Notes: generated by a model from the letters alone, not told the origin. A stretch of DNA of 64,000 bases from Hypanus sabinus (GCF_030144855.1 NC_082714.1:109616001-109680000), one strand, 5' to 3'. Counted from the first letter of the stretch, positions 37,993-59,720 are shown. Numbers and translations are program-made.

Positions 37993-38099
37993 TAACTAGG
38001 CTTCACTAGAGACAAGCAAGGCTATGAAAACCCATAATTCTTTACAACTGGCTCAGTTAGACAAGTTAAGCATTTGGCTTGATTTGAAATGTTCATAAT

Positions 38100-39169: not shown

Positions 39170-39805
39170 GCAGCCTCGAGGCCAAGAAGCTTAGAGAAGG
39201 GGTGCAAGCCCACGATCAACTCCATTTCTCGCCGATGTCGACGATTAAAGCATTGAGGAAGATTGAAAACATCAAGGCGAGTGGGAAGGTGAGCCAGTGT
39301 TCAGTACCGTCTATCAGTCTCACACGTGCTGCCGGAGGAAGGCGCCTGCATGTGTCAGTCTCTCTCTCACTGCTCCCGAGGAAGGCCCCTTGCATTCAAA
39401 TAGTCTCTCTCTCTCTCCCTTGATATGTTGGAGGATGGTACTGCAGTTCTGGGTCTGAAGGTTGTGTAATGGACTGTAGTTTCTGGTCACTCCTTTTTCT
39501 GTTGTTATTTTGGGCGACTGAAATAGGGTGACCTGCAGATAATGGGCACTGAGCTGAACGGAATATTGGCTCTTTCAGTTTTGTGTTTTTAATTCTGTGT
39601 TTTCGCATGCTCTTTCTGGTTGCCACTTTTCCATTTGCTTTTTGCGTGTGGGGGTGTTGGTGTACTTGTTGCCATTTGTGGGGGTGTTGTTGTTTTTCCT
39701 TGAATGGGTTCAATGTTTTCTTTGTTTCGTGGCTGTCTGTGGAGAAGATGAATACTAGGGTTGTATACTGCAAAAACACTTTAATAAATGTTCTTAGAAT
39801 CTTCT
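39170..39805 (+). mobile_element. Non-autonomous LINE-derived element (Rex1-like 3' UTR)
   Basis: GT-rich 3' end ttgtttcgtggctgtctgtggagaagatgaat...aataaa, similar to the Rex-type tails in this window. Confidence 0.5.
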
Positions 39806-39924
39806 GAAGCACACACATTAACTTGGAAAAGAAGAAATTGAGAAATGAGTGAATATGTCAGTCACTTTACTTTTATCTGATGATCAATCAACCAATATAT
39901 TAGTCAAATTCTGAGTGAAAAGCA

Positions 39925-40060
39925 AACAAGTGAAAGTCTGCAGATGCTGGTAATCTGAGCAACACACATGAAATGCAGAAGGAACTCAGCAGGTCAGCCA
40001 TCTGTACTGTTTTCCCATAGACGCTGAGCTGCTCCAGCATTTTGTGTGTGCTGCCCTGAG
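39925..40060. mobile_element. Internally deleted fold-back Penelope pLTR pair
   Basis: tctgcagatgctgg...aaatgcagaaggaactcagc followed by its inverse gctgagctgctccagcattttgtgtgtg. Confidence 0.6.
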
Positions 40061-40939
40061 CAAAGAGTTCCATGTACTCTGCACAGAAAGTTATGTGATT
40101 GCATATCAACAGAAACTTAATTCTAGGAAAATGCGGCTGAGTACTTAGGCAATTAGCCATCAAAACTTGCTACAAACTTCTTTGGCAGCGTGTGTGAAAC
40201 TGTCGAGTTCTGCATCAACAACAGAGACAGCGAGTTTGGTACATTCCCCTCCCGAAGCAAAAGGGCATTAGTCCTGTGCACAAACACGGGCTCACTGAGC
40301 TGTGCTATAGCAAAAAGTGAAATTTTAAATTTAAGTATGCAGCAGATTTTAAATTTCATTGAACGGTATTATAATGCCTCAGCACTCCATTACAAAAAAT
40401 GGATTGCAACTCATAGAATATTGCAGAAAACTGTGTTTTGTCTCTTTTATTCTGGAATTTCTAGTATTGTTGATTTTGTAAAAATATACTTGATCCTTAA
40501 CTAACCAGCTTTTTTTAACTCATTGGCCTCTCCTATTCCCTGTGTTTGTTGGATAGTGAAGCTTTTACTGTACATGATCATAAAGTTTAACCAGCATATA
40601 AACCAGGAGTATCCATGACTGTACCTCTTAGAGGGGATATACTCATTGCCTGCAACTGCTGATGGAATTATTCCACATTTCACTCATTTGTGTAGGGAGG
40701 TACCAGTATGGACAATATCAGATGACACAATTTTCCAGTGTTGCCTCAGAAGCCTTGATGGACAAGATGCTCTGCATGTTTTTCATAAATATGGAAGTAA
40801 CTAAGGGCGTGGATGTAATTACAGTAAAGACTGGAAACTACGTAATGAAATCTCATGTCTCAAAACATATGTCTAGCAGCTCAGCAACATGGAGAAGAGC
40901 CTGGGGCTAGTACCATCATGGTTCATTCAAGATAACAAA

Positions 40940-41830
40940 GAATGTTGGAAATATTTAGTAGTGCAGGCAGCATCTGTGAAGAGAGAGAAAAATGGTTAAT
41001 AATTTGGGTTGATAACCTTTTCATTAGAACTGAGAAAGTACAGAGATCAAGTAGTACATCGAGCAAAGAGAACGTCTATGATAAGATGGAGACAGAGATC
41101 GAATGACACAAAGGTAGTAAAGGCTTGTTAATTTTCAACATCTATATCACCTTTGCTTTACAAATATCGAAGATGTTTTATTTCATCCAAAACCAATCTT
41201 CTCAGGTGCCACTTACTCACATCCCCACATTGCTGTGATTTACAATCATGTATCTCTTACTTTGTTATTTCCTCTCCATGGGAATTGAAAAGCTTATTGG
41301 TCAATGCAAGGATGATAATCAGCTTCCAGCTGACTGTCATTTTAATCCTTCATCCCACTCATACTCTGACTTCAATGTTCTTAACCATTCCAATAAAGTC
41401 CAACGTAAGCTCAAGAAACAGCGTCATGCTTTCTGACAAGTCATGTTACAAACCTCAGGACCTAACATTGAATTTTGTAATTTTAGGTAAGCAGCCTTTC
41501 CAGTTTTTATCAGAAACAGTATTTTTCCTCTATCCACTGTTCCCATTTGGTTGCTTTTTAACATCATGCCCAAACAGATACAGTGGAAACTAATAAGCCT
41601 TTACCAACTTCTCTCTGTCAGCACCAGCACCTCCATCACTTCTGTCATTCAGTCCCTTGGTCTTCACCTCATCAGAGACTTTCTCTTTGTTTTCACCTCC
41701 TTTCTCCTTTCACTGCAACTTCAATTTATCCTGGTTCTGATGTAAGGCCACTGAGCTGAAACATTAACTCCATTTCTTTCTTCACGGATACTGCCCGACC
41801 ACCTGAGCATTTCCAGTGCTTTCTACTTCT
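40940..41830 (+). mobile_element. Old Penelope-like element: GIY-YIG endonuclease C-terminus between inverted pLTR remnants
   Basis: QLPADCHFNPSSHSYSDF..VQRKLKKQ..LQTSG.NIEFCNFR* resembles the PLE EN tail; degenerate hammerhead ctgatgtaaggccactgagctgaaac at ~41737-41762. Confidence 0.7.
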
Positions 41831-42066
41831 ATTCCTCTCACCATGATTCTGCTGAAATGTTTTCTCAGAGAGTCAAACACACACACCTCACTCGGAACTA
41901 GTTGCTGGACTCATGAGATTATGCATTCTGACAAACACTCACAGCCAAGAGTTGGCACATCGCTTGCTAAAGGAGTTAGCACAGAAGTGGGATCCACACA
42001 TGACAATTCACTGAGCAGTAGGAAAATGCAGCTCACTACTACAGCAAGGTCACACACGAGTTCTTC

Positions 42067-45000
42067 CCATAGAACCATAGAACATTACAGCGTAGAAACA
42101 GGCCTTTTAGCCCTTCTTGGCTGTACCAAACCATTTTTCTGCCTAGTCCCACTGACCTGCACCTGGCCCATATCCCTCCATACCCCTCTCATCCATGTAC
42201 CTGTCCAAGTTTTTCTTAAATGTTAAAAGTGAGCCCGCATTTACAACTTCATCTGGCAGCTCATTCCACACTCCCACCACTCTCTGTATGAAGAAGCACC
42301 CACAACCCCCCCAGTGTTCCCTTTAAACTTTTCCCCCTTCACCCTTAACCCATGTCCTCTGGTTTTTTTTCTCCCCTAGCCTCAGTGGAAAAAGCCTGCT
42401 TGCATTCACTCTATCTATACCCATCATAATTTTATATACCTCTATCAAATCTCCCCTCATTCTTCTACGCTCCAGGGAATAAAGTCCAAACCTATTCAAC
42501 CTTTCTCTGTAACACAGTTTCTCAAGTCCCGGCAACATCCTTGTAAACCTTCTCTGCACTCTTTCAACCTTATTAATATCCTTCCTGTAATTCGGTGACC
42601 AAAACTGTACACAATACTCCAAATTCAGCCTCACCAATGCTTTATTCAACCTCACCATAATATTCCAACTCTTATACTCAATACTTTGATTTATAAAGGC
42701 CAATGTACCAAAAGCTCTCTTTATGACCCTATCTACCTGTGATGCCACTTTTGGAAATTTTGTATCTGTATTCCCAGATCCCTCTGTTCTGCTGCACTTC
42801 TCAGTGTCCTACCATTTACCTTGTATACTCTACCTTGGTTTGTCCTTCCAAAGTGCAATACCTCACGCTTGTCGGTATTAAACTCCGTCTGCCATTTTTC
42901 AGCCCATTTTTCCAGCTGGTCCAGATCCCTCTGCAAACTTTGAAAACCTTCCTCACCGTCCACTACACCTCCAATCTTTGTATCATCAGCAAATTTGCTG
43001 ATCCAATTTACCAAATTATCATCCAGATCATTGATATAGATGACAAATAACAATGGACCCAGCACTGATCCCTGTGTCACACCACTAGTCACAGGCCTCC
43101 ACTCAGAGAAGCAATCCTCCACTACCACTCTCTGCCTTCTTCCATTGAGCCAATGTCTAATCCAATTTACTATCTCACCATGTATACCTAGCAACTGAAT
43201 CTTCCTAACTAACTTCCCATGTGGGACCTTGTCAAAGGCCTTGCTGAAGTCCATGTAGACAACATCCACTGCCTTCCCTTCATCCACTTTCCTGACAACC
43301 TCCTCGAAAAACTCTTAATAGATTTGTTAAACATGACCTACCACGCACAAAGCCATGTTGATTCTCCCTAGTAAGTCCCTGTCTATCCAAATACTTGTAG
43401 ATACTATCTCTTAGTACTCCTTCCAATAATTTACCTACTGCAGACGTCAAACTTAACGGCCTTGATGCACCATCAATAACTCACTCTGAGATGTAAGGCA
43501 TGATATCAGCTTTTATTGACTGGAAGAAGGAACCAGCAGTGAGTGACCACCATGCTACATTCTGGAGACTGAGAGGCCGGGCTCCGGCCTTGATCGTCTT
43601 TATACTGGGGTCTGTGGGAGGAGCCACAGGAGCAGTCAGCAGGGGGCGTGTCCAGACAGGTATATGTAGTTCACCACAGGCCTATAATTTCCCAGATTAC
43701 TTTTTGAGACTTTTTTAAACAACAGAACAACATGAACTATCCTTCAATCCTCCGGCACTTCACCCATAGATACCGACATTTTAAATATATCTGCCAAGGC
43801 CCCTGAAATTTCAACACTAGTCTCCGTCAAGGTCCGAGGGAATATCCTGTCAGGTCCTGGGGATTTATCTACTCTGATTTGCCTCAAGATAGCAAGCACC
43901 TCCTCCTTTTCAATCTGTATAGGTTCCATGACCTCACTACTTGTTTGTCTCATTTCCATTGACTCCATGCCAGTTTCCTTAGTAAATACAGATGCAAAAA
44001 AACCCATTTAATATCTCCTCCATTTCTTCTGGTTCCGTAAATAGCCGACCACTCTGATCTTCAAGAGGACCAATTTTATCCCTTGCTATCCATTTGCTCT
44101 TAATATACCTGTAGAAGCTCTTCGGATTATCCTTCACCTTGACTGCCAAAGCAACCTCGTGTCTTCTTTTAGCCCTCCTGATTTCTTTCCTAAGTATTTT
44201 TTTGCACTTTTTATACTTCTCAAGTACTTTATTTGCTCCCTGTTTCCTATACATGTCATACATCTCTCTCTTCTTCTTCATCAGAGTTCCAATATCCCTA
44301 GAGAACCAAGGTTCCTTATTCTTATTCACTTTGCCTTTAATCCTGGCAGGAACATACAGACTCTGCACTCTCAAAATTTCTCCTTTGAAGGCCTCTCACT
44401 TACCGACGACATTCTTGCCAGAGAACAACCTGTCCCAATCCACGATTTTTACCAACGTTTGTAGATCCTTTCTCATTTTTTCAAATTTGGCCTTTTTCCA
44501 GTTTAGAACCTGAACCCGAGGACCAGATCTATCTTTATCCATGATTAAGTTGAAACTAATGGTTTTATGATCACTGGAACCAAAGTGTTCCCCTACACAC
44601 CCTTCCATCACCTGTCCTAACTGGTTTCCTAATAGAAGATCTAATATTGCATCCTCTCTAGTCGGTACCTCTATATATTGATTCAGAAAACTTTCCTGAA
44701 CACATTTTACAAACTCTAATCCGTCTAGACCTTTAACAGTATGGGAGTCCCAATCAATATACAGAAAATTAAAATCCTCTACTATCGCAACTTCATGTCT
44801 CCTGCAGTTGTCTGCTATCTCTCTGCAGATTTGCTCCTCCAATTCTCGCTGACTATCGGGTGGTCTATAATATAACTCCATTAATGTGGTCATACCTTTC
44901 CTGTTTCTCAGCTCCACCCATATGGCCTCAGTAGATAAGCCCTCTAATCTGTCCTGCCTGAGCACAACTGTAACATTCTCCCTGACTAGCAATGCCACCC

Positions 45001-45895
45001 TCCCACCCTTCATCCCTCTGCCTCTATCATGTCTGAAACATCGGAACCCTGGAGCTGCCAGCTCTGCCCCTCCTGTAGCCAAGTTTCACTAATGGCTACA
45101 ATGTCATAATTCCATGTGTCAATCCACACCCTCAGCTCGTCAGCCTTCCCCACAATACTCCTCGCATTGAGATAGACACACTTCAGAAGATTATTACCAC
45201 CACACACAACCCTTCTATTTGTGACTTTGCATAAAACTTTAATATCATTTATTTTCACCCCCGCTCCACTACTCTATCACTCTGGTTCCCATCTCCCTGC
45301 AAATCTAGTTTAAACCCCCTTCCCCAATAGCACTAACAAACCTCCCTGCAAGGATATTGGACCCCTTGTAGTTCAGGTGTAACCTGTCTCTCTTGTACAG
45401 GTCCCACCTGCCCCAGAAGAGGTCCCAAAGATCCTGAAACCTGAAACCCTGCCCCCACACCAGTTCCTCAGCCATGTGTTCATCCTCCAGAGCATCCTAC
45501 TCTTACCCTCACTGGCATGTGGCACAGGTAGCAATCCTGAGATTACCACCCTCGAGGTCCTGCTTTTAAACTTCCTACCAAGCCCTCTGCACTCACTCTT
45601 CAGGGCCTCCTCATTCTTTCTACCTACGTTATTGGTACCGATGTGTACCACGACATCTGGCTGCTCACCCTCCCACAGGCATGCTATTTCACACACCTGT
45701 GCAGTCTCGCCTCTTTGCCCTGATCAGTTAAAAAACCGGCTTCTCTCTGAGATGCCTTTACTGCTTCCCTCTCCGCCTCTTGCTTCGATTTAAAAGACCG
45801 TTGAAAAATTCCTCTCCTTTTTAAACCTTTGGCGCGCGCTACATCACACGTCTGCGCAGTCTAGCCTCTTTGACCCGATGAGTTTAAAAAAATCC
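42067..45895 (-). mobile_element. Near full-length CR1 LINE (ORF1 SGNH-esterase part; ORF2 APE + RT), frameshifted, carrying a solo-LTR insertion
   Basis: VVVHIGTNN (esterase), YLNARSI..AISETW, YYRPP, GSSDH (APE), DFSKAFDKVPH, QGSVLGP, KFADDTK (RT); tail (TTCTATGG)n. Confidence 0.95.
43463..43678 (-). mobile_element. Solo LTR (216 bp), TSD GGCCT, inside CR1 ORF2
   Basis: GGCCT at 43458-62 and 43679-83; TG...CA ends. Confidence 0.93.
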
Positions 45896-47227
45896 CCTGC
45901 AGATATAACTGAGGACTGCATGTGCAAGCTGCACAAGATTAAAAGGTGCTTAGATAAATGTTTTCTGGCCTGGCCTGCATGAGATGCCAAGGAAGAAGGA
46001 AGAATCTACATTTGAACAGATCTATGGTCAGACCCTGAAGCTATCTTTCTATAACGGAGGTGGTTGTGTGCTTTAACTCCGTACTCTCACAAAATTCAAA
46101 CCATTATGCATCCCTAATGGTCAGTATCTCAGTAGAAGCCATTCAGTGTTTGAGTCTTCAATAGAAGCTCAAACTCCTACCACCTCAGCTCAGTCTGCAG
46201 CTCTTCACAGCAACAAAAGTGGATGCAACCTAAAGCCAAAGCGGTTTGATGTTTCCATTTAGGACAGAGAGCAAACTCATCCACTCTAAATGAGCAGCCT
46301 TCCAACGGTATGGCTGCAGGCACTAGAGGAATGAATTGGGCTGATGCACAAGAGGGATTAATCAATCACATAATTTTAATTTTAATTAGATGAATGAATA
46401 TGGTTTGAAATAATACTTTGATTGGTTCTTCTATTCATAAATTGTAGTCAAACAGATGCTGAGATGATCAGCATGTGAAAGAAAATTCACTGAGAATGGT
46501 GCAATGAGGAATACATGTCCCATTTCATTCACTGAGTGAATTTGGTAGCAAACCAGCACTCAATCTGTATTCCTGGCATCTCTGAGAAGGTAGCAAAGAG
46601 CTGTCTTCTTGAACCGCTATGTCTGTGGTGAACATACTCCCACAACGCTGTTAAATGAGTTCTAGGATGTTACCAAGTGACAAGGAAGATGAGCTACTGT
46701 TTCCAAAACAAAGGATGATTGGGGCTTAGGAGGTGAAGTTACCTGCATAATGTAAACATGCAATTTGTGTCATCCACTTATCCATGAGTAAAGGCCAAAT
46801 TTCCAAAGCAAACAAATGAATGGTTAAATGGTTATGTGGAATCCTCTTTCATTCATCAATGTTTTGCAGTATTTATTATTCTGAGTTGCTTTCATTATCA
46901 TCGCGAATAGTAAGCACTGATGATGGATACCAATGTGGCAATTACTGCCAAATGCTTCCCTAGTGACCAGTGAATAGATAATTGATCGAAAGGCCAATGG
47001 CCCTGAGCGCAGTAAATAGTTACCTACATTCATACAAAGTCAGTAAAGTTGGCAAATCCCTCTGTCCAAGAAGTCAGCTTTGCCTCTATGAAATCAAAAG
47101 ATTTTTTTTTCTTCAAAGCCTTGGGATCTCACCAATGCGGCAGTCAAGAGCAAATTAACGATTGTTACAAAGATTTGCTGTGGTGAGCTGAGAATGATAC
47201 AGTGGCATTAAGTTGGGAGTCACCGTC

Positions 47228-47452
47228 TGATGCACCATCAATAACTCTCTGGGACGTGAGGAGAGATATCGGCTTTTATTGACTGAAAGAAAGAACAAGC
47301 AGTAGTTGACCACCATACTACATCCTGGAGAATGAGGGCCGGGCTCAGGCCTCAATCGCCTTTATACCGGGGTCTGTGGGAGGAGCCACGGTCAGTGGGA
47401 GGGGCCACATGAGCAGGGGGCGTGTCCAGACAGGTATATGTAGTTCACCACA
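47228..47452 (-). mobile_element. Solo LTR (225 bp), TSD CCGTC
   Basis: CCGTC at 47223-27 and 47453-57; TG...CA ends. Confidence 0.93.
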
Positions 47453-49256
47453 CCGTCAACTTGACTCACATGAATTCCAGACGCAAGAACCTGACCAAAA
47501 GTCATCCTCAAGGCCTTATCTATCTTAGTGATTACAATCTTTAAAAACCTAAGCTAGCAAAGACTTTGCTCATCAGACCAGTCCAGGTACAATATTCTGG
47601 GAGTAGGCTCTTTGTTGATGAATAGCTTTATCTCTTCTTCAAAGACGTCAAACTCTCTCAATATCACCTGTGATGAATTTCTTTAAACCTGTAGTAATGG
47701 GTACCTTCTCGTACTTTCACAGCTGAGATATCCTTTAAATGTTTCCTCTTAATAATACACCTAACCCCTTGGGATCCAATATGTAGGACCCTAGACTGTA
47801 GTCCTTATGCGCAAAGTCTTATAATACCTGCACCAGGCTTCAGTGCATCCTTCAGCATATACTCCTTGCCCTGAAACGTGCCAGTCAGCAGCTTTCAATT
47901 ACAAGTATCTTCTTACACTGCTAGACCAACAAGTCTCAGATAGACCAAAGCACACTTTCACCAGATTGTTGATATTCCAGCAGCAGTTGATGCTTGTCTC
48001 AGTATCACCTCTGAGAATAGCATGTAGATGCAGCTGCTTGTGGTGGATCTCAACAAGGGTTATTGCATCCTGTTCCAGATCTTCTTAACAAGTACACAAA
48101 GAGATGGACAATCATCCACATCACTGCAATCTTGAAGTTAGCATGTGGTGTGAGTGAGGCTCCAGCTATGCGGAAAGGGAAGGCCCCTCTCACTGAGAGC
48201 CCAGTAAGGTCTTACTGCTTGCTTGTGAATTCTAGTGAAATGACATTCTGCAAAATAACATTAAAATCTCAAAAAACTGTTGCACTATTCAGTATGCCAT
48301 CACAGGGCCTGCGGGACTTCTTGTGTAGACTACTTCTTGAGGTCTTGTAGTCAAAACCATTTATATTTTGCAACATTTTCAGAAATTACAGGCAGTGTGG
48401 CAAGGTTCTACCGAATGGAACATTGCATAACAACAATACCAGGCCCATTCTACACAGCACCAAAGACACCTCAGCACACACTGACAACTGTATACTTGAG
48501 TTCTACAAATAACTGATGCAACCATATGTGTTCATCATGTTGAGGGCTATACTGGATACAATTCCCCACTTTGCTCTAGGGTATATCACAATCCATTAGA
48601 TACAAGATATCTTACATCTCCAGATAAAATGGATAATGGCTGCCACAGTACAGGAATGTTACTTGCTCCAAATATACCGGCACAGGGAGTATCTTGTACC
48701 TTATGACCAGATCCATGCCCACCATCCAGAGAGAATACTGCTCCCAGATTCCCAATTTCTATTTTACCTTGCCTATCTTCTCCACCAAAGAGCTATGGAC
48801 TCTGATTTCTATTAGTTTGCTGGGAAACTAACAGGCCATCAGAAATGTCTGACCCTATTTCACAATCAGGGCATTTTCAATCAAAAATAAAGTGATCTGC
48901 TCTAAGTAAAATTAACATCAGATTGCAAACCACTGAAAAAGAAACGTTAAATGATTTCTTGTATCTATATCTGATATGTACATGAATCTGAGACTCTCCC
49001 CGTTACTGATATCCCAGAGTCTCCATAGACCCTGTTGGCTACAATAATGTATTTGATGGTTAAGGTATTTTAATATTGAAGACAATGTCTGAACACTGAA
49101 GTTCTGAGATCAGCAAATGAGATCAGCCTATTAGCTTTAGACAATTTAATTCACATCCAGTTAACATTTCACTTATCAGATGTTTAGCCTTCCAAATAAG
49201 TTAAATATTCATAGATAAAGTAAAAACTCTTTTAACGTAACATTTATAAGTTACAA

Positions 49257-52200
49257 CTTTCTTTCTTTTTCAATCTTTTTATTGAGTTTCATATACAAAA
49301 GAAAATAATAATATAACATTGAATAGGTTATAATACACTAGGCTTGAAATTAAATTAGTAACAAGATATCAATATCTTATTGAGATATCAACAGAGAACA
49401 TCATAAGATAATCAATCAAGCCTATATTAATTGTATATGAAAAAAGGATAATCACAAAAGGGAAAAAAAAAACAAGAAAAAATATGTATTAAAATAAAGC
49501 AATAAACCTTAACTAACATGGGCAATAATAATAGTTTATATATACATGATAGTGTCAAGAACTCTGGAACTCCATACCAAAACAAGGATTAAAAGAAAAA
49601 AGGTCTGGAAGAGGTCAAATTAACTCATATGAAAATGTCGAATAAACGGTCCCCAAATCTCTTCAAATTTAATTGACGGATCAAAAATAGTACTTCTAAT
49701 TTTTTCTAAGCTCAAACAAGAAATAGTTTGAGAGAACCACTGAAACGTGGTAGGAGGGCTTACTTCTTTCCAATTTTGTAATATAGACCTTCTAGCCATT
49801 AGAGTTGCAAACGCAATCATTCGTCTAATCGAAGGGGAAAATTGACTACCATCCTCAATTGGTATACCAAAAATTGCAGTGATAAAATGGGGTTGTAAAT
49901 CAATATTCCAAACTGAGGAAATGATAGCTAATATGTCCTTCCAATAGTTATGTAAGGTGGGACATGACCAAAACATGTGGGTCAATGAAGCAACTTCTGA
50001 GTGACATCTGTCACATTGAGGGTTAATATGGGAGTAGAATCGAGCAAGCTTATCTTTAGACATGTGGGCTCTATGTACCACCTTAAATTGTATTAAAGCA
50101 TGTTTAGCACATATAGAAGAAGAGTTAACCATTTGTAAAATTTTTTCCCATTTTTCTGTTGATATAGTATATTGAAGCTCTTTTTCCCACTCTTGTTTAA
50201 TTCTTCCTGACATTTCTGGTTGTATCTTCATAATCATATTATAAATAAGAGCCACTAAACCCTTCTGACAAGGGTTCAAGGTAAAAATTATATCTAAAAA
50301 ATCCATCGGAGTTGAATTGGGAAAGGATGGTAAAACTTTATATAAAAAGTTTCTGATTTGTAAATACCTAAAAAAATGAGTTTTAGGTAACTTAAATTTG
50401 TTAGAAAGTTGATCAAAAGACATCAGACTACCTTAAAAAAAAAATCACGAAAGCATATTATACCTTTCCTTTTCCATATGCTAAAGGTTTGATCTATTAA
50501 GGAGGGTTTAAAAAAAAAGTTAAATAAGATAGGGCTATCAAGAACAAAATTTCTCAGAGTGAAAAACTTAAGAAATTGAAACCAAATTCGTAATGTGTGT
50601 TTGACAATAGGGTTAGATATTTGTTTATTGAACTTAGCTAAATCAGCGGGAAGGAAAGATCCAAGAACGGAGAATTAAAAAGTATCCTCGTGCATCATTA
50701 CATTCCAAATTTACCCACTGTGGGCATAATGGTGAATCCAAATCATGTTTCCAGTATATTAAGTTTGGAATGTTATTCGCCCAATAGTAAAATCTGAGGT
50801 TAGGTAAAGCTAAACCACCATCTTTTTTTTGGTTTCTGTAACTGTTTTTTACTTAACCTGGGGTTTTTATTTTACCACACAAATGAGGAAATTTTTGAAT
50901 CTATGTTATCAAAAAAAGATTTAGGAATAAAAATTGGTAGAGCTTGAAATAAATATAAAAATTTCGGTAAAACCATCATTTTAATAGCATTAATCCGACC
51001 AACCAATGATAAGGATAAGGGAAACCATCTAGTAGTAAGTTGTTGAATTTGATAAAGCAAAGGTAAAAAATTCAATCTGAATAAATCTTTATGTTTCTTA
51101 GTAGTTTTTATACCTAAATAAGTAAAGTTATCAGTAACAACTTTAAATGGTACCCTGTTGTTCATTAAAGTTTGCGCATTTAAAGGGAATAATTCACTCT
51201 TATTCAAATTTAATTTATAACCAGAAAAGCTACCAAACTGAGCCAACAAGGATAGAATAGCGTGAATAGACCTATCAGGATCAGAAATATATAACAAGTC
51301 ATCAGCATATAGTGATAACTTGTATAACTTCTCATTACGGGTGATACCAAAAATATTAGGTGATTCACAAATAGCAATGGCTAAAGGTTCAAATGCAATA
51401 TTAAATAATAGAGGACTTAAAGGGCAACTTTGTCTTGTACCGCGAGAATTGAAAAGAAGAGGATCTATGATTATTAGTAAGAACAGAAGCAACAGGTTTA
51501 TAATATATTAGTTTAATCCATGATATAAATTTGGAACTAAAATTAAAATTTTTTAACACATTAAATAAGTATGTCCATTCAACTCTATTAAAAGCTTTTT
51601 CAGCATCTAATGATATGACACATTCTGGGGTTCTGGGTGAAGAGGTATAAATTATATTAATCAGTTGTCTAACATTGAAAAAGGAGTACCGATTCTTAAT
51701 AAACCCAGTTTGATCTTCTGAAATAATCTGTGACAGTATCTTTTCTAACCTAATAGCTAAAATTTTATTTGAAAGAATTTGTAAAAATTTGTAAGAATCT
51801 TAGAATCTACATTTAATAGCGATATAGGGCGATAGGATGCACTTAGGGTAGGGTCCTTATCTTTTTTAAGAATTAGGGAAATAGTAGCATCATAGAAAGA
51901 CTGAGGTAATCTCTTCTTAATAAATGCATCATTGAAAATTTCACATAACCATGGGGAAAGCAAGGAAGAAAAAGTTTTTAAAAATTCCATAATATAGCCA
52001 TCAGGGCCTGGGGCTTTCCCTGAGTTCATTGATGAAATAGCCTCTCCTACTTCAGCCACAGAAATAGGAGCATCAAACAAACTCCGATCTTCATCTGTCA
52101 GTTTGGGAATATTTAAATTATTAAAAACATCATCCATCATGGACAGATCGCCATCGGATTCTGATTGATATAAAGATTTATAAAAATCTTGGAAAGTTTT

Positions 52201-52515
52201 ATTAATTTCTTTATGATCAGTAGTCAAATTACCATCTTGTTTACGAATTTTAATAATTTGTCGCTTAGTCGAAATAGCTTTTAATTGGTTAGCTAATAAT
52301 TTACCAGTTCGATCACTATGAATATAAAATTGAGCCCCGGTCTTAATTAATTGATTCTCAATTGAAGAAGATAATAATAAGCTATGTTCCATTTGAAGCT
52401 CAACTCTCTTCTTATAAAGTTCTTTGGTAGGAGTCACGGAGTAAATCTTATCAATTTCTTTAATTTTATCCACCAATATAACTATATCAAGATACCTTTG
52501 TTTTCTTTTACCAGC
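49257..52515 (-). mobile_element. 5'-truncated L1-clade LINE (ORF2 RT + CCHC), frameshifted
   Basis: GKAPGPDG, SYRPISLLNVDSKI, RGTRQSCPLSP, LYADD, YLGI, CDRC..HMFWSC; AATAAA and A-rich tail. Confidence 0.95.
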
Positions 52516-52879
52516 ACAACTTTTCCAGCTTGAATCTAAATTTGCCATTTTACATCTTTCTGATTTTCAAATCACTAATCTAAATATCCCAAATATTTTT
52601 CCTGTAAAATTATGGAATTGATTTATTATCTCATAATAATGTCTTGTCACTTTTCCATAGCACCCTTCTTTCAATGCCACATTTTCAGGTTTTTACACAG
52701 TGGACAAAATGCCATAACTAATTATCTATTTTTCAGGCTCAATTTGTTTTCCAGAAGTAATAGTAAAACGCAAAACTCTCCTTCCAACTTCCACTGTACT
52801 TTTATCAATATATTTAGCCTTGTTCAAGAGGTAGGTCTTCTCTATAATTCTATTTTTTTTAAACCTCCAGGTTTGTTTA

Positions 52880-54305
52880 TTACTTTAGATCACCAGGACA
52901 ATAGTAATATTTGTGTTAAGCTGCTGTTTATTGATTACAGCTCAGCATTCCAGCACAATCATGCCATCAGCTCTAATCAAAAAGGTCCAGAACATTCTAA
53001 TCAATGAGCTCCAAAACCTGGGCCTCTGTACCTCCATCTGCAACTGGATCCTTGACTTCCTCACCGGGAGATCACAGTCTGTGTGGATCAGAAATAACAT
53101 TTCCTTGCTGACAGTGCACACTGGTGCATCTCAAAGATGCATGCTTAGCCCACTGCTCGGCTCTCTCTACACTCATGATTGTGTTGCTAGGCACAGTTCC
53201 AACACCATCTATAAGTGTACCGACAACGTACCTGTTGTTGGCAAATGGTGACGAGGAGGCCTACAGGAGTGAGATAGATCAGCTGGTTGAGTGGTGTCAC
53301 AGCAACAACTTTGAACTTAACATCAGTGTGACCAAGGAATTGATTGTGCACTTCAGGAAGGGGAAGTCGAGGAACACCCACCAGTCCTCATCGAGGGGCC
53401 AGAAGTGGAAGGGTGAACAGTTTCAAGTTCCTGGGTATCAACACCTCTGAGGATCAATCCTGGGCCCAACATATTGATGCAATTATAAAGGAGGCACAAC
53501 AACAGATATATTTCATTAGGAGTTTAAGGAGATTAGGTATGTCACCAAAAACATTTTCTACAGGTGTACCCTGGAGAGCATTCTAACTGGCTGCATCACT
53601 GCCTGGTTTGGAGGGGCCACTGCTTCAGAAAGTTGTAAACTCAACCAGCTCAGTCATGGGCACTGGCTTCTTCAGCATCCAGGATGTTTTCAAAAGCTGA
53701 CCCCCATCACCCAGGACATGCCCCCTTCTCACTGCTACCATCACGGAAGAGGTACAGAGCCTAAAGACATAATCTCAATGTTCTGGGGACAGCTTCTTCC
53801 CATCAGCCATCAGATTTCTTTTTTTAATAATTTTCTTGAGTTTCTACAACACAACTACAAAAAAAATCAACAAAATGGAGATTAATACAGCGCAGAACAA
53901 ATGTGTCTAATATATAATTCATGACAATAAGGAAAAAGCACCCAAAATAAAATCATATAAAGTTAGTATCCTCCCCACCTTCCCACTACAAAACCCCAGG
54001 CCAACCATTTCAATATGTAAAAGAAAAATAATCAGAGCGTTCGACCCCACAGAGCTGTAAATATATATATTAAAAATATATATAATTCCTACTACCAAAA
54101 CGTTTCTTAATGGATAATGAACCCATGTACACTACCTCAGTATTTAACACTTCTCTCTTTGCACTATTCATTTAATTTATGTTTTACATAGTTCTTATTG
54201 TAATTTATCATTATTATTATTATTATTATTGTTATGGCAATGTACTGCTGCTGAAAAACAAAAAAATTCATGACATATGCCAAGGATATCAAACCTGATT
54301 CTGAT
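52880..54305 (+). mobile_element. Rex1/Babar-type LINE with an antisense L1-like 3' UTR insert (~53817-54100)
   Basis: [33 protein letters not shown]; TTTCTT duplicated at the insert edges; tail aaacctgattctga. Confidence 0.85.
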
Positions 54306-54699
54306 ACTTAACAAACTCTCTTTCTGCTATATGGGATTTGAATGCAGTTTTCAGATCAACAGTCTGGCCTTTGGATGCCACTTTAGTAAATTAATTACCT
54401 TGGTACCCTTGACTAAAATCTGAGTATTCACATTTTATTCCTATCTTTGTCAATATCTTCATTTAACCAAAAAAAAACAGCAATTCTGGTATAACTCCTC
54501 TAAAAAAAAATCAATGTTAACCCTCTCCAATTGGTTTATATATTTTTTACATGGTCCACTACTGCCTCTATCTATCAACTCAACAATAAAGTCATTCTTG
54601 TTTTGCAAGACTTTGTCTTGGAAAATCAATTTTGCTACCCTTCCTAGAATGACTAGTTAACTATTTCAACAGAAGTCCCATTGAGGCAAGAACGTTACC

Positions 54700-55095
54700 C
54701 TGCTTGTTAGTGAAGATCATAGGGTATAATACAGAAAAGAAGCAGAAGAGGTTCACCAGGATATGTTGGAGAGCTTTAGCTGTAATGTAAGGTTGTACAG
54801 ACTTATATTGTTTTCTCTGGATGGCCAGAGGCTGAGAGGTGAAATATATAAGATTATGAGAGGCATGATAGATGGAGTCTTTTTCCAGGGTTGGAAATGT
54901 CAAATGTTATAAGATGTAGGTTTAAAGTGAAGGGAGGAGTTTAAAGGAGACTTGAGGCAAGTTCCTTTACACTGAGAGCACTAGATGCCTAGAATATGCT
55001 GTCAGTGAAGATGATAGAAGCACTTAAGGCATTTAATAGACGCATGAATGGACAGGGATACAGACCATGTGCAGGCATATGGGATTAGTTAGACT
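54700..55095 (+). mobile_element. Degenerate CR1 3' fragment
   Basis: gcagaagaggttcaccaggatat...aggctgagaggtg..tataagattatgagaggcat. Confidence 0.75.
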
Positions 55096-56171
55096 GCCAT
55101 CTATGACCTACGCTCAACAGTTGTTCATACATGTTTTTGGTTTCAGTTATTCTTGAAATAATTATGAGAAAATTTTTACTTGGTTTGAATGTTTCCCTGT
55201 CTACTCTTAGCAGCAAATATCGAACTCACCTACATCTAACAGACCAACAAAATGTGTTTCTTAATAAAGATTCTTACTTATACGTTATTATTGGTGATAG
55301 AGCAAGAGACCAGAGAGAAAAGGAATTCAAGAACGTACACATTATTGGAAAAGGAAGATGGAATCCACATTCTCTACTCTGCAGTGAGAGTGTATAAATA
55401 TGACCTCTGAAATGTACTTAATCACCTCAAAGTATTTCATAACTAACTTTGAATGAACTATTTCATCCAGACATGTAGGCTCCTTCCAGCACAAGGAGAG
55501 CCTCTACTGTTCCTGAGAGAGAAACCTTTGCACTAAACTTTTCCCTTACAGGCTTTTTAGAAGTGCAACCTTAATTAGCATATTGTTCATTTGTCAATTC
55601 CACTTATTAAATATCAATTCTGTTCATTAAATATTTAATAATGAGGAATAATTTATCATTGATTGCTAGCACTATACTCTGCAAACTGTGGATATCATCC
55701 TCCAGGTGTGATTACTTTATGGGAAAAGAATATGCAGAGATGAGTATCATTAGTTCTTGATATTGTTGAATGGGTTTATCCCCAGCCCCGCCCCCACACC
55801 TCTTCGACATTCCCTCTCCTCCTTGCCTTCTCCCCTACAATTTTATCAAGGAACTGTGAAAGTTAGGCAAAGTATGTTACAGAAAATATAAGATGCAGAA
55901 GGCAATAATGCTAGCAACAAACAAAAAGGGATAACTCAGGGAAATTGAACAAAACTTTTCATGGAAAAGGGAGAAGCACACTTACAGGCTGCAACTGTAT
56001 TATTGTAATGGGAGCCAAAATTAATTGTGCAGCCACTGGGGAAATGCTTTGAACATTGAGATGAGGCTTGGGACTATTACATGGTAATTAAACATACTTC
56101 AGCACTGGTGTATGAAGGATCATTCACAGTTTCTATTACTGAGAGATGAACCATTGTACTGAACATCTTTC

Positions 56172-56210
56172 ATGACTACTTCCATGAATACAATATATGC
56201 TAATAAACTG
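56172..56210 (+). CDS. Predicted first coding exon (MTTSMNTIYANKL) of the decapeptide-repeat protein gene
   Basis: ATG follows an in-frame TGA (56160-62). 13 codons end at a consensus donor CTG|GTAAGT (phase 0). In frame with acceptor ttcttcag|GAA at 57211/57212. MNTIYANK resembles the repeat unit MNTYAK. Confidence 0.55.
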
Positions 56211-56238
56211 GTAAGTCCCCTGCCAAAAGCTCCATCTC

Positions 56239-56251
56239 GTTCCATGGCAAC
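56239..56251. promoter_or_regulatory. RFX X-box-like motif GTTCCATGGCAAC
   Basis: One base short of the canonical GTTGCCATGGCAAC, with a perfect CCATGGCAAC half; 29 nt into the predicted intron 1. Confidence 0.45.
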
Positions 56252-57211
56252 TCATTCAGTACACGTGTAATCTTTCTGCAATTCAGTAATCTTCATCTCA
56301 CCTTCCTCAGTGTTTTCCAAAACCTCTGCAGAACACACCTCCATTTCCATAGCCCACAACACTTTAATCATGTAAATAACTAACTCTCACAATTTGCAAG
56401 ATTGTCAAAAGCTGAAGGATAAGCTCTCGACCCTATTGCACGCCCAGTAATGCTACAGACCTCTGGAGTTCCAAAGTCAATTGGCTTTCTCTCTGTGCGG
56501 TATGTTATCAACAAGTTTGTCTTTGAACATTGCTTTTCCAGTGATGGCTTCATAGTCGATCTTCTCAACACATTAGTAGGACTGAAGCCTCGATAACTGA
56601 ATGTGTAGATGATTAAGCTATGTGAAAGCAGTATTATTACTGTTACATTATAATTGGCAGACCATTCTTCTACTACATTTGTCTTTTACAAAATCACTAG
56701 CAAAATAAAAATCTGGCCTGTGATTTTCAATTGTTAATTTTAAACAGCAATAAAAGCTTTAACACCTAAAGATGACACCATACTATGAATTTTGTAGCAG
56801 AAACGATAAGGGGTATGGTTAGAATATGATAGAGTGGGGTGAATTTTCAAGTAGAGATAAAAGAGATATATCTGTATCCATTTGGATATTAAAGGTGCTA
56901 TATAAATGTTCATGCTGTTCCTAAAAATAATTTTCAGCAATATATTTTGGTGTAGGAGGGTGGATGGCTGCTTAGTTAGCACATCTGGTAAAACTAACCA
57001 GACGCAAAATGTTGATTTGACCTTTCTTTTGGTTTAAGTATTAGCGACTAGTTTGGTTTATGTTTTACTGCATATTAGACCAAATGGAGGGGGGAGTGTA
57101 TGTTGTAAATTATCTTTATCATTATGCTGTAGCTTATAAAATCATTTGAGTCCTAGGGTATAACAACTCATTAGCAACTTTTCCCTAAATAACAGATGGT
57201 AAATTCTTCAG

Positions 57212-59581
57212 GAATATGAAACATCATCATATCCTATGGGAACCTATACTGCACTTCAATATCCTATGAATACGTATGCTAAAGTTCAGTATCCTGTGAG
57301 GACCTACCCTACATCTCAATATCCTGGAGAGAGCTATGCTATAACTAAATATCCTGTGGGGACATATGCCACATCTCAGTATCCCATGGGTAACTATGGC
57401 AAACCTGAATATCCTATGGGAACCTATGCCACAGCTCGGTATCCTGGAGGAATCTACTCAGATCAGTACTCTGGAGGAGCCTATGCCACATCTAAACCTC
57501 CTGTCGCAATTCATGCCAAAACTCAGTATCCTGTGAGGAACTCTAGTGAAGCTCCATATCTGGCACCCTCCTATGTTGCAAATCAGTATCCTACGAAGAC
57601 TTATGTCATGGGCCAACATCACATGGGCACCTACAATTCAGTTCCTTATCACATTAGAAACTACGTCGCTGGTCACTATCCTCTGACCCACTTTTCACCT
57701 CAGTATGCAGTGAGGAATTACATTGTGGGCCAGAGTCTGCAAAACAGTTTGCAAACCTATCTGTTGCCTATCGACTCTGCAAGGACCGATACCACGGATC
57801 AGCATTCCACAACAAGCCATGATACAGATACAGATGGGAATGTTCAAAGAATCAATAATGCAAGCCAAGATTTTGAAATGATTGACACCATAGATGAGGA
57901 TCTTACAAGGAGTGAGAGTGTAATAGACCAGGATTTTGAAAGGGCTGTTAGTGCTGATCAAGACCTTGAGAGGGTTGACAGCATAGACCAGGATTTTGAA
58001 AGAACTGATTCCACCGACCAGGATACTGAAAGGATTGAGGTTGCAGACCAGGAAGCTATGAGGTACAGCAGTGAAGATCAAGATTCTGTGAGAGGTGTGA
58101 GAGGTGATAGTCTAGAGAGGGATTCGATGAGCTCAGGGCAGTATTCTGAGAGAACTGAAAGCGTAGACCATGATCCTATCAACGTTGACAGCAGGAGCCA
58201 GGATATTTCAAAGATGGACGAAGTCGAGGGCTTCATGGAGACTGAGAGAGCAGGGCTAAATGCTGCAGCGAACAATGGAATAGGCAAGGATGTGGAGAAG
58301 ACAAAAAACACTTCTGGGGGCCCCATGAGGGCATACTTTATACCTAGGTATCTTGTGGATGCCTATGTTGCAGGTCAGTATCCTGCAATGGCCAATAATG
58401 CAGAAGGATACTTTGTACCAGCTTACGCTCCTCATTTTCCTGTGAGAACCTGCATTGTAAACCCAGGTTTTACAAGGGCCTATATGGCGGTTCAGGATCC
58501 AAACTGGACTGATAACTCAGCTCAGGACCTCTCTAAGGTCAGAAGCCCAGAACAGAGTCCTGCAAACACAAAGAGCCCAGAACAAAGTCCTACAAAGTCA
58601 AGAAGCCCAGAACTCATGGCTACAAAAGCAAGAAGCCCAGAACTCATGGCTACAAAAGCAAGAAGCCCAGAACTCATGGCTACAAAAGCAAGAAGCCCAG
58701 AATTCATTCCTACAAAGTCAAGAAGCCCAGAACTCATGCCTACAAAGGCAAGAAGCCCAGAACTCAGTCCTACAAAGGCAAGAAGCCCAGAACTCATGCC
58801 TATAAAAGCAAGAAGCCCAGAACTCATGCCTACAAAGGCAAGAAGCCCAGAACTCAGTCCTACAAAGGCAAGAAGCCCAGAACTCATGCCTATAAAAGCA
58901 AGAAGCCCAGAATTCAGTCCTACAAAAGCAAGAAGCCCAGAATTCATTCCTTCAAAGGCAAGAAGCCCAAAATACAATCCTACAAAAGAAAGAAGCACAG
59001 AACAGCCTCCTGCAAAGGTGAAAAGTCCAGAGCAGGGTCTTACCAGAAGCCTCGAACAGAGTCATGTGAAGAACAGAAGCCCTGCCCAAAATTCTATAAA
59101 GAACAGAAGTCCTGACCAGTATTCTGTAAAGACCAGAAATAGATACCAGAGTTCTGGAAGGACCAGAAGCCCAACCCAAGGTCCTGTGGAGATTAGAGAC
59201 CAAGTCCAGGGCCCTATGAAGAGCAGTACCCCAGGCCAAGATAGCATAACAAGTAAGACAGAAGAACCTGTAGGCACCTATGTAGCAGCTCAGTATCCTG
59301 TAGCAATCCATTTTACAGGTTTGTATCCTTTTAGGAGCTACCTGACATCTCATTATCCTTCAGGTACTTATTTTTCAGATCATGTACCAATGAAATATGT
59401 GACACCTCCATATCCTACAAGAAACTGCGTTACACCTCAATATCCTGTCCAGACCTGTGTGCGATATCCATTGATAAACTGCAGTTCACCACAGTATCCT
59501 GTGAGATCCTACAAAGTCCCAGTATATCCCCTGAAGACCAACGTTGAACCTAAATATCCTGTGAGGTGTGTCAGCCTTTAA
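57212..59581 (+). CDS. Large terminal coding exon of an uncharacterised decapeptide-repeat protein (781 aa from ATG 57236; ~802 aa if spliced to 56172-56210)
   Basis: 2.37-kb stop-free frame in TE-rich DNA. The diverged 30-nt repeats keep frame (length variants are whole codons). No TE motifs. Open upstream to EYETSSYP at 57212. AATAAA at 59673 and 59715. Confidence 0.88.
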   Translation, partial: EYETSSYPMGTYTALQYPMNTYAKVQYPVRTYPTSQYPGESYAITKYPVGTYATSQYPMGNYGKPEYPMGTYATARYPGGIYSDQYSGGAYATSKPPVAIHAKTQYPVRNSSEAPYLAPSYVANQYPTKTYVMGQHHMGTYNSVPYHIRNYVAGHYPLTHFSPQYAVRNYIVGQSLQNSLQTYLLPIDSARTDTTDQHSTTSHDTDTDGNVQRINNASQDFEMIDTIDEDLTRSESVIDQDFERAVSADQDLERVDSIDQDFERTDSTDQDTERIEVADQEAMRYSSEDQDSVRGVRGDSLERDSMSSGQYSERTESVDHDPINVDSRSQDISKMDEVEGFMETERAGLNAAANNGIGKDVEKTKNTSGGPMRAYFIPRYLVDAYVAGQYPAMANNAEGYFVPAYAPHFPVRTCIVNPGFTRAYMAVQDPNWTDNSAQDLSKVRSPEQSPANTKSPEQSPTKSRSPELMATKARSPELMATKARSPELMATKARSPEFIPTKSRSPELMPTKARSPELSPTKARSPELMPIKARSPELMPTKARSPELSPTKARSPELMPIKARSPEFSPTKARSPEFIPSKARSPKYNPTKERSTEQPPAKVKSPEQGLTRSLEQSHVKNRSPAQNSIKNRSPDQYSVKTRNRYQSSGRTRSPTQGPVEIRDQVQGPMKSSTPGQDSITSKTEEPVGTYVAAQYPVAIHFTGLYPFRSYLTSHYPSGTYFSDHVPMKYVTPPYPTRNCVTPQYPVQTCVRYPLINCSSPQYPVRSYKVPVYPLKTNVEPKYPVRCVSL
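58535..58999 (+). repeat. Coding 30-bp minisatellite (TKARSPELMP-type), about 15 units
   Basis: Near-identical tacaaa(a/g)gcaagaagcccagaactcatg(g/c)c units, with a 90-bp triplet duplicated (aa 499-558). Confidence 0.97.
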
Positions 59582-59672
59582 TAGTGGAATCATTGGTCCT
59601 GTATCTGTGGGCATCCGCCCTTAAACAAGCTGCGGCCTTCTATCAGCGTAAAAGTAGACTTAGTGAAAATAG

Positions 59673-59720
59673 AATAAAGCCAGTCATGACCACTCCAACT
59701 GTATCTTTATTTTTAATAAA
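59673..59720 (+). terminator. Two AATAAA polyadenylation signals
   Basis: AATAAA at 59673-78 and 59715-20, about 90 and 135 nt after the stop codon. Confidence 0.6.

Follow-up and report, generated by a model that had tools for sequence, protein, structure and literature searches.

A spliced two-exon stingray gene with a long reading frame of decapeptide block repeats and a putative scaffold product

What kind of gene holds the one long reading frame unrelated to transposable elements in a 64,000-nucleotide stretch of the Hypanus sabinus genome (hereafter the window), and what could its product be for? The initial annotation had placed at 56172-59720 a gene consisting of a single ORF for a protein of about 800 amino acids, the only long ORF of its kind in the 64 kb. 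We identified a single ORF of 781 codons in a frame that is open for 792 codons from position 57203 (Table 1), by far the longest open frame of the window. The runner-up (351 codons) sits in a 20-nt minisatellite, and the remaining ones are fragments of reverse transcriptase or endonuclease genes. Shuffles of the region reach at most 214 open codons, and the coding frame is free of internal stops, whereas the two alternative frames of this strand contain 41 and 44.

Transcription, splicing and a poly(A) signal were all found, as befits a real gene, and the locus is a spliced, polyadenylated, two-exon stingray gene. The ORF first described is thus real but not free-standing: it constitutes exon 2, and a leader exon lies 23 kb upstream. 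The proposed start at 56172 is wrong, being about 1 kb too far upstream; stops crowd the frame upstream of 57203, and RNA coverage begins at 57196 or 57211. The proposed end at 59720 comes near the real transcript end (~59695) without being exact, with RNA contigs ending at 59679 in run X1 (RNA of the same species) and at 59695 in run X2 (RNA of a relative).

Table 1. Positions in the window of the gene, its transcript features and the blocks of its product.
Feature	Position	Strand	Description or basis
Candidate core promoter	33736..33779	+	TATA-like TTTTATAAAA at 33736-33745, ATAAA at 33774-33778; read from sequence
Exon 1, untranslated leader	about 33770/33808..34025	+	RNA depth, junction contig, donor read from sequence
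Intron, ~23.2 kb	34026..57195	+	X3 junction contig; minus-strand retroelement fragments inside
Exon 2, entire coding region	57196 or 57212..~59695	+	RNA contig coverage
CDS, 781 codons and TAA	57236..59581	+	Open frame, no internal stop
Block A, Tyr-Pro decapeptides (xGTYATxQYP)	57236..57739	+	aa 1-168
Block B, acidic decapeptides (S-x-D-Q-D-x-E-R-x-D)	57770..58315	+	aa 179-360
Block A', degenerate Tyr/Phe-Pro units	58316..58534	+	aa 361-433
Block C, basic KARSPELMPT decapeptides	58535..59245	+	aa 434-670
Block A'', Tyr-Pro units with four Cys	59246..59578	+	aa 671-781
Poly(A) signal AATAAA	59673..59678	+	92 nt past the stop codon; RNA contigs end at 59679 and 59695

Exon 1 contains short upstream ORFs only, and its 3' end is an ATG followed by the donor GTAAGT (34026-34031). 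In the bin 33888-34061 the RNA depth is 5724 in run X3 (organism B, a relative that is ~7% diverged), versus 5 in the DNA run X4. The loose end of an X3 contig before 57195 corresponds to 33996-34024 with two mismatches, indicating a direct junction between exons 1 and 2. The most 5' contig of X3 begins at 33808, right after a Nextera adapter. Candidate promoter elements would sit just upstream of the first transcribed bases, and we infer that the true transcription start lies somewhere within 33770-33808. ORFs inside the intron match the Pfam families RVT_1, Exo_endo_phos_2 and zf-RVT, and X1 has no RNA depth just upstream of exon 2.

Exon 2 has two acceptors, cag before 57196, which organism B uses, and ttcttcag before 57212, which Hypanus sabinus uses. 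Use of the acceptor at 57212 puts the exon-1 ATG in frame and adds M-EYETSSYP to the protein, while in transcripts using 57196 an in-frame TAA (57200-57202) closes the frame. Coverage by X1 contigs is confined to 57211-59679, and the match of one of them ends at 57211, with five unaligned letters beyond. Exon 1 was not seen in RNA of Hypanus sabinus, as may be expected from a depth of 2-10 on exon 2. DNA depth in X4 is flat, consistent with a single-copy gene, and neither a paralogue (blastn, tblastn) nor an Rfam family was found in the whole window. Two loose ends in organism B, one after exon 1 and one before exon 2, hint at an extra exon; when sought in the window, including all 57 kb upstream (up to 3 mismatches; blastn-short), neither was found.

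Transcripts are present in RNA of the same species (X1) and of a relative (X2, X3). Contig depths in X3 are 3,500-5,700 across exon 2, with both exons in the thousands, while X2, from the same study, has a depth of 25-59; the gene's sequence is absent from X10 and X11, which belong to the same study as X1. The RNA level is therefore very high in one sample of a relative, and the RNA is absent from other samples; where we speak below of one cell type, this is a matter of depth differences among a handful of runs. As a side observation, this very abundant mRNA arises within a retroelement desert.

The layout of the protein, A-B-A'-C-A'', and its residue make-up agree with the earlier description. 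The 87-kDa product is composed of ten-residue repeats with five Cys in total. Block A has 17% Tyr, with 11 YP and a Tyr spacing of five. Block B consists of DQDxER units (net charge -31, pI 4.1), in which D, Q, D and R persist at their positions across synonymous codon changes, and block C is basic (net charge +24, pI 10.7), with 17 RSP and 25 Ser/Thr-Pro sites. Block A'' has nine YP and four Cys, and ends in CVSL, a CaaX-like C-terminus. According to Tandem Repeats Finder, block A repeats every 30 nt with 68% matches and block C does so with 87% matches over 15 copies, and the core of C, 13-15 units that are 87% identical, is young. Block A' has a DNA match of 23-24 nt in common with A and A'', and only these three blocks have DNA words in common. 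One common 30-nt ancestor for A, B and C was considered but has no support from the DNA, as the best cyclic matches (13-14 of 30) are equalled by 6-52% of shuffles.

Consistent with the initial annotation, hydropathy, Pfam, PDB and AlphaFold are all blank with respect to a signal peptide, membrane segment or globular domain. No Pfam domain scores above its cut-off and no PDB sequence matches; there is no hydrophobic segment anywhere in the protein, the best 19-residue Kyte-Doolittle mean being 0.77. The N-terminus is hydrophilic (mean hydropathy -0.72 across 30 aa) and has no signal peptide, and the upstream frame is shut by the TAA at 57200-57202. The AlphaFold model has a pLDDT of 34 and no secondary structure, from a single sequence, for which models are often poor anyway; the protein is predicted to be disordered throughout.

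The claim that the protein cannot be assigned to a known family also stood up, as an exhaustive search gave only look-alikes of single blocks. The protein has no match in a word index of 5.8 billion proteins, and a HMMER search over 1.84 billion representative proteins returned no homologue: its 209 matches are each to one block of unrelated repeat proteins, including a crayfish SRRM2-like protein, futsch, fungal Sec16 and a hagfish SET-domain protein. A feature search of the ESM-Atlas gave low-complexity single-block look-alikes only, and five peptide words of the protein have no match in the published literature. Identity as an SRRM2-like protein was rejected, since in the best match (crayfish, E = 3e-55) the alignment to block C is limited to the SRAQSPKGTP repeat, and the Pfam scan shows no conserved N-terminal cwf21-type domain, which together with RS-dipeptide domains marks SRRM2-like proteins. 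The hagfish match, with DQSSERVER repeats, is an unrelated insert in a 3492-aa SET-domain protein, and the two best block-A matches are ORFs called across minisatellites on unrelated contigs that have no DNA similarity. In Pfam, block C weakly matches DUF1388 (E = 0.002; 18.2 bits, below the cut-off of 25.9), and there is neither a match to Cornifin or Involucrin nor a Filament or MAP1 domain next to the K/R-S-P repeats. SEDC proteins, involucrin, loricrin and SPRR are absent from the named top HMMER matches examined. Outside close ray species, relatives are thus undetectable.

The lack of stops in old repeats had been taken to imply selection on the protein. This holds for the openness of the frame and for a small number of motif positions, but not for most residues. 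In a simulation of decay, block A stays free of stops with a probability of 0.0025-0.0135 and block B with one of 0.02-0.06; neutral decay would have given the old repeats stops (P about 0.003-0.06 per block), and the reading frame is therefore selected. The motif positions under selection are Tyr, Pro and D-Q-D..R. In organism C, a relative that is 3% diverged, the indels listed in the ORF are all multiples of three (+3, -6, +6), versus -18, +2 and +2 outside the ORF. One X2 contig of organism B carries a possible in-frame TAA at codon 573, by which that species or allele would lose the final third of its protein. Selection on residues is not borne out between species, where 8 synonymous and 30 non-synonymous differences (pN/pS 1.05) leave residues nearly free. 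The exon has diverged by 2.8%, versus 1.4% for nearby non-coding DNA (p = 3e-4), and at least five further species have the sequence at ~95-97% identity. Over the long term the reading frame is maintained while most residues change near-freely and repeat length changes in frame; a product that is dispensable or under weak constraint would likewise give a pN/pS near 1.

With moderate confidence, we regard the locus as a taxonomically restricted stingray gene for a non-secreted, disordered block-repeat protein that is abundant in one tissue or cell state. It is best read as a lineage-restricted protein with a structural or scaffold role in one differentiated cell type, closest in kind to the involucrin/SEDC-type cornification proteins, among which it would be placed by analogy. 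Such a protein would act as bulk material or scaffold, not as an enzyme or ligand. Many weak aromatic contacts could come from the three Tyr-Pro blocks, with their 55 Tyr mostly five residues apart, acidic block B and basic block C may pair within or between chains, and phosphorylation of the Ser/Thr-Pro sites in block C could cancel its charge. The composition makes it reasonable to suppose a structural or condensate scaffold in which phosphorylation might switch a charge block. Cross-linking by transglutaminase, as with cornified-envelope precursors, might act in addition: TG2 prefers Q-x-P(-hydrophobic) (PMC2988817, PMC6265872), and as ten Q-Y-P motifs fit this preference and every C unit contains Lys, covalent cross-linking is a concrete option.

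SEDC genes have a non-coding exon 1 and one coding exon, with a G|GTAAG donor, and are reported missing from fishes (PMC4245816). Cornification proteins in general lack a fold, are repetitive and of low complexity, and have independent origins (PMC13487633). The stingray gene has the SEDC donor and exon layout, a leader exon 1 followed by an exon 2 with the CDS, with the terminal ATG of exon 1 as a possible start via 57212. Like SEDC proteins and involucrin, its product lacks a signal peptide and a fold, and has tandem repeats of roughly ten residues with old degenerate and young homogeneous parts, Gln (Q-x-P) and Lys for transglutaminase, fast length-variable evolution, and high, sample-restricted expression. 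In contrast to these proteins, there is no sequence similarity, and the chemistry is Tyr-Pro instead of Gln/Glu or Gly/Ser/Cys. Exon 1 is ~220 nt long, versus 60-90 nt from the TATA box in SEDC genes, and whereas SEDC genes are clustered between S100A genes, there are no S100A or other EDC neighbours within the 64 kb here; the 57 kb upstream and 4 kb downstream contain no S100, SFTP or further repeat-protein gene.

Other low-complexity proteins share single traits with the stingray protein. High-Gly/Tyr KRTAP, cyclostome KRTAPL and amphibian AEDC proteins are, likewise, Tyr-rich, disordered, of low complexity and non-secreted, and have independent origins (PMC13487633). However, KRTAP-type proteins are small (tens to ~200 aa) and encoded by clustered multigene families, whereas the stingray protein, 781 aa long and with three block types of differing chemistry, comes from one gene that lacks a paralogue in the window. 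Block C has K/R-S-P-E runs like those of neurofilament H/M tails and the K-S-P regions of MAP1B/futsch, and such regions (futsch, SRRM2-like) are its best look-alikes. In neurofilament H/M and MAP1B/futsch, phosphorylation of the K-S-P sites sets charge and spacing. The stingray protein, however, has no intermediate-filament rod or microtubule-binding domain, and the likeness is compositional and confined to the repeats. The regular Tyr in a polar, Pro/Ser/Thr/Gln-rich background resembles the prion-like Tyr-'sticker' domains of the FUS family, and the oppositely charged blocks resemble phase-separating block polyampholytes, but unlike the FUS family there is no RNA-binding or folded domain, and Tyr occurs with Pro, not with Gly/Ser. 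Mussel foot protein 1 and elasmobranch egg-case proteins likewise repeat every ten residues, each unit having two Tyr and Pro, but are secreted with signal peptides, which the stingray protein lacks.

In the structure of its gene, the dynamics of its repeats and the pace of its evolution, the protein resembles involucrin/SEDC- or KRTAP-type terminal-differentiation proteins, probably by convergence. Elasmobranch epidermis is not known to cornify, so that the cornification analogy has no known anatomical home. It is quite improbable that stingrays evolved their own bulk terminal-differentiation protein de novo by expansion of 30-nt minisatellites, and that this non-secreted triblock polymer (Tyr-Pro, acidic, basic), cross-linked or coacervated, hardens or fills a specialised cell. 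The cross-links would be made by transglutaminase on Q-Y-P and Lys, or by Tyr chemistry. If true, this would be a cartilaginous-fish convergent counterpart of involucrin/SEDC and KRTAP-type proteins, described to date from tetrapods and cyclostomes only.

A special case of an abundant non-secreted scaffold is a structural protein specific to sperm or germ cells, for instance in the cytoskeleton of the sperm head or tail, with reproductive selection driving its rapid evolution. Repeat genes that are young, evolve fast and are highly expressed most commonly belong to the testis, and the orphan status, the pN/pS of about 1, an exon that outpaces its flanks, the change in repeat length, the Cys in the C-terminal block and the strong expression differences between samples would all suit such a role. 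We nevertheless consider it unlikely, as Cys is low (five residues) compared to known sperm tail or nuclear proteins, and the sequence has nothing germ-cell-specific.

The same rate of change, together with the lack of homologues, is compatible with a very young gene or proto-gene that arose from 30-nt minisatellites in the retroelement-rich desert and is strongly transcribed with little or no constraint on its product, or acts as RNA. The entire ORF consists of units with a 30-nt period, YP decapeptides much like these are encoded fortuitously by other minisatellites, the flanks have diverged less, and a relative has a possible premature stop. Against this, blocks A and B are old (unit identity at most 68%), yet have no stops in 621 'old' codons, whereas the other frames have 6.6% stops; the probability is about 4e-19 at that rate, and 0.0025-0.06 per block as simulated. 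In addition, motif residues survive synonymous changes, listed indels in the ORF are multiples of three and ~95-97% identity is kept in at least five further species, which makes an unconstrained proto-gene improbable.

A secreted matrix, adhesive or mineral-associated protein, with its signal peptide in a missed exon, is very unlikely. It would account for the Tyr/Pro decapeptides, 20 S-x-E motifs (putative secretory-kinase sites) and the unplaced letters that flank the junction in organism B, those after exon 1 including an ATG (AGATGCTTGCG). But the X3 contig joins exon 1 directly to exon 2, the TAA at 57200-57202 in Hypanus sabinus stops read-in from any exon joined at 57196, a splice to 57212 contributes just the exon-1 ATG, the N-terminus is hydrophilic and the unplaced letters are missing from all 57 kb upstream. 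CaaX boxes seldom have Ser at the second aliphatic position, and although CVSL immediately precedes the stop and fits the CaaX pattern as a sequence, and block C resembles K/R-S-P side-arm repeats (the weak DUF1388 match), this atypical Ser at a2 and the possible organism B stop at codon 573, which would remove CVSL, make it highly unlikely that the protein is a disordered brush tethered by geranylgeranylation to the inner membrane face, with charged blocks as a phospho-regulated spacer like neurofilament side-arms.

For annotation, the locus illustrates that a very abundant mRNA may come from a retroelement desert; the encoded protein is missing from the two protein collections searched. In materials and condensate research, its natural sticker/acid/sticker/base/sticker layout offers a ready system for studying how block polyampholytes assemble and how phosphorylation controls this. 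If the product were dispensable, the locus would still be a useful case of a long ORF that is kept open while its residues drift. If instead the product is among the major structural proteins of a ray tissue, the locus would cleanly exemplify how a gene is born from tandem repeats, being a single gene of known exon structure whose three repeat blocks differ in chemistry, and it could be another independent origin of low-complexity proteins that harden or scaffold cells, as in tetrapod skin and the horny teeth of cyclostomes.

The window contains a 781-codon ORF, in a frame that stays open over 792 codons starting at 57203. The initial annotation had placed the gene at 56172-59720; the ORF is real, but this 5' limit lies about 1 kb too far upstream, with many stops in the same frame before 57203. 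Chance does not account for the ORF: open frames in shuffles of the region reach at most 214 codons, and the coding frame has 0 internal stops where the two remaining sense frames contain 41 and 44. It had been annotated as the only long ORF in the 64 kb unrelated to transposable elements; the window's other long ORFs are reverse-transcriptase/endonuclease fragments or lie inside a 20-nt minisatellite, which accounts for the GC-rich, strongly G-skewed composition at 24-28 kb and for the long minus-strand ORFs without a Pfam match there.

Features of the gene and of the surrounding window (nt, window-relative; aa, positions in the ORF product)
Feature	Position	Strand	Remarks
20-nt minisatellite	24806-27092		GGACTGGGGTTCTGGGAATG, ~115 copies, 75% matches
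Exon 1	~33770/33808 to 34025		contig start 33808; donor GTAAGT after 34025
Intron			23 kb, packed with retroelement pieces
Non-LTR retroelement fragments	34385-35826, 42733-45085, 49620-52566	minus	RVT_1, Exo_endo_phos_2, zf-RVT, ALKBH8_N-like motif
Exon 2	57196 or 57212 to ~59695
ORF	57236-59581	plus	781 codons + stop
Cys-Val-Ser-Leu C-terminus	59567-59578		CaaX prenylation box pattern
Poly(A) signal	59673-59678		AATAAA
Block A	aa 1-168		17% Tyr, 11 YP
Block B	aa 179-360		net charge -31, pI 4.1, DQDxER units
Block A'	aa 361-433
Block C	aa 434-670		net charge +24, pI 10.7, 17 RSP, 25 Ser/Thr-Pro
Block A''	aa 671-781		9 YP, 4 Cys

The gene is real and expressed, as shown by transcripts in three RNA runs (X1, apparently from the same species as the window, and X2 and X3, from organism B, a relative about 7% diverged), by splicing of exon 1 to exon 2 and by the AATAAA signal. 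The RNA contigs end 3' at 59679 and 59695. Just 5' of the ORF are a polypyrimidine tract and two AG acceptors, cag before 57196 and ttcttcag before 57212. The X1 contigs (99-100% identical to the window) span 57211-59679, with no coverage on either side, and the match of the first ends exactly at the 57212 acceptor, with five unaligned letters beyond. In one X3 contig, 57195 is preceded by 29 foreign letters that correspond, with two mismatches, to window positions 33996-34024, after which GTAAGT follows. When runs were compared across 31800-37000, depth over 33888-34061 was 5,724 in X3 versus 5 in the DNA run X4. One contig begins at 33808, immediately after a Nextera adapter, with TATA-like sequences 30-70 nt further upstream. 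Exon 1 terminates in ATG (GTG at that position in organism B). Joined at 57212, the ATG is in frame and adds M-EYETSSYP, extending the Tyr-Pro repeat; with the 57196 acceptor, a TAA at 57200-57202 shuts the frame, and translation must begin at 57236. The N-terminus is hydrophilic with either acceptor.

Expression differs by orders of magnitude among samples: in X3 both exons are covered very highly (contig depth 3,500-5,700 across the exon 2 span), whereas X2, from the same study, reaches 25-59 on parts of exon 2 and X1 only 2-10, and none of the sampled exon words occurred in two further runs from the study of X1. The retroelement fragments, which sit inside the intron, are transcribed at moderate summed depth in every RNA run, as multi-copy elements would be; the ALKBH8_N-like motif is frequent in non-LTR retroelements. 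Organism B contigs run on at window positions 34027 and 57194; the letters following exon 1 are TTGTCACCAAGAGATGCTTGCGAAATTTGG and those preceding exon 2 are AACTAATCTGAGCCTTACTG. Neither is found anywhere in the 64-kb window, and they may represent a species-specific additional 5' exon or divergent unspliced intron. Organism C, a relative about 3% diverged, shows 0 differences in the 296 nt of 33882-34177 (exon 1, its donor and the initial 150 nt of intron), where about 1.4-2.8% is usual nearby; the exon differs by about 8% in organism B, which makes this conservation signal weak.

Residue make-up, charge and motif counts per block bear out the A-B-A'-C-A'' arrangement of decapeptide-repeat blocks. 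Successive tyrosines are exactly five residues apart in 33 of 54 gaps, and the 30-nt period (Tandem Repeats Finder) gives 68% matches in block A and 87% matches over 15 copies in block C. The Tyr-Pro blocks A, A' and A'' are related, having 14-24-nt DNA matches in common; no such match was found for the A/B, A/C and B/C pairs. The 30-nt period common to the blocks is real, but comparison of the consensus units gives no support for one ancestral 30-nt unit, the best cyclic match being 13-14 of 30, a value that 6-52% of shuffles reach.

Selection, proposed to act on the protein, is borne out for the reading frame and a small number of motif positions, while the remainder changes fast. Blocks A (17 units) and B (18 units) are old, and mutating consensus arrays to 20-30% divergence leaves no stop with a probability of 0.0025-0.0135 and 0.02-0.06, respectively; if stops arose at the 6.6% rate seen off-frame in the old blocks, finding none in 621 codons would have P ~4e-19. 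Block B preserves its D, Q, D and R positions through synonymous codon changes, and the listed indels in organism C are +3, -6 and +6 within the ORF versus -18, +2 and +2 outside. Most residues, in contrast, are free to change: the 38 differences listed from organism B over codons 573-711 comprise 8 synonymous and 30 non-synonymous ones (pN/pS 1.05), and 7 of the 10 listed for organism C are non-synonymous. From organism C, exon 2 diverges by 2.8%, and the unique non-coding DNA that surrounds the two exons by 1.4% (Fisher p = 3e-4). In an X2 contig, a C>A change at 58953 makes codon 573 an in-frame TAA instead of TCA; the site is exactly 31 nt short of the end of the contig and borders the young repeat array, and the rest of its frame is open and repeat-like. 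This may reflect a genuine truncation, an allelic variant or an assembly artefact where the array ends.

In the protein (87 kDa, pI 8.5, GRAVY -0.86), hydropathy over 19 residues peaks at 0.77, so that it has, as annotated, neither a signal peptide nor a membrane segment; no globular domain is visible either. No Pfam family exceeded its cut-off (DUF1388 alone appeared, at 18.2 versus 25.9 bits required) and no PDB sequence matched. The single-sequence AlphaFold model (mean pLDDT 34, secondary structure essentially absent) would agree with disorder, within the limit that such models are often poor. The C-terminus resembles a putative CaaX box.

The protein could likewise not be assigned to a known family. 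A word-indexed search of 5.8 billion proteins gave no match, and exhaustive HMMER on 1.84 billion representatives gave 209, each pairing one repeat block with an unrelated repeat protein (block C with crayfish SRRM2-like proteins and futsch, block A with Malassezia Sec16 and assorted others, block B with a hagfish protein); the window's own protein is absent from both collections. The hagfish match, a SET-domain protein of 3,492 aa, carries a DQSSERVER insert specific to its lineage and has neither Tyr-Pro nor RSP blocks, and the two nearest block A matches are short minisatellite ORFs in unrelated contigs, without DNA-level similarity. We conclude from these searches that no homologue appears detectable outside close relatives. 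In DNA-sized runs of at least five further species one third of the exon's 31-mers are present (~3% divergence), and X4 depth is flat and single-copy over exon and flanks. The family is new and apparently restricted to stingrays, though of a known kind, the orphan repeat-built disordered proteins.

Terminal-differentiation proteins of the lineage-specific, low-complexity type are the closest kind. Involucrin and other simple epidermal differentiation complex (SEDC) genes have a non-coding exon 1 followed by a single coding exon (PMC4245816), and the same traits are described as having been invented independently in KRTAPs, cyclostome KRTAPLs and amphibian AEDCs (PMC13487633). The ray gene is similar in exon structure, lack of signal peptide and fold, old and young repeat arrays and fast evolution. 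It shows no sequence similarity to SEDC proteins in these searches, however, and the neighbourhood within the 64-kb window contains no S100 or sister genes; we do not file it as a member. The likeness of block C to neurofilament, MAP1B and SRRM2 repeats is compositional only.

The mRNA is abundant and sample-restricted, and its product non-secreted, disordered and repeat-built. Judged from the sequence, the structural scaffold proposed initially is plausible: the protein would serve as bulk material or scaffold, with regular Tyr adjoining Pro providing multivalent weak contacts, complementary charges in blocks B and C, and a block C charge that could be switched through the 25 proline-directed sites. 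Transglutaminase 2 prefers Q-x-P(-hydrophobic) (PMC2988817, PMC6265872); the ten Q-Y-P motifs, followed by Val, Met or Ala in eight, fit this preference and every block C unit contains Lys, so that covalent cross-linking by transglutaminase is possible. Expression in a tissue that builds a specialised structure, or cross-linking or condensation of the protein, would, if true, make the gene of greater interest.
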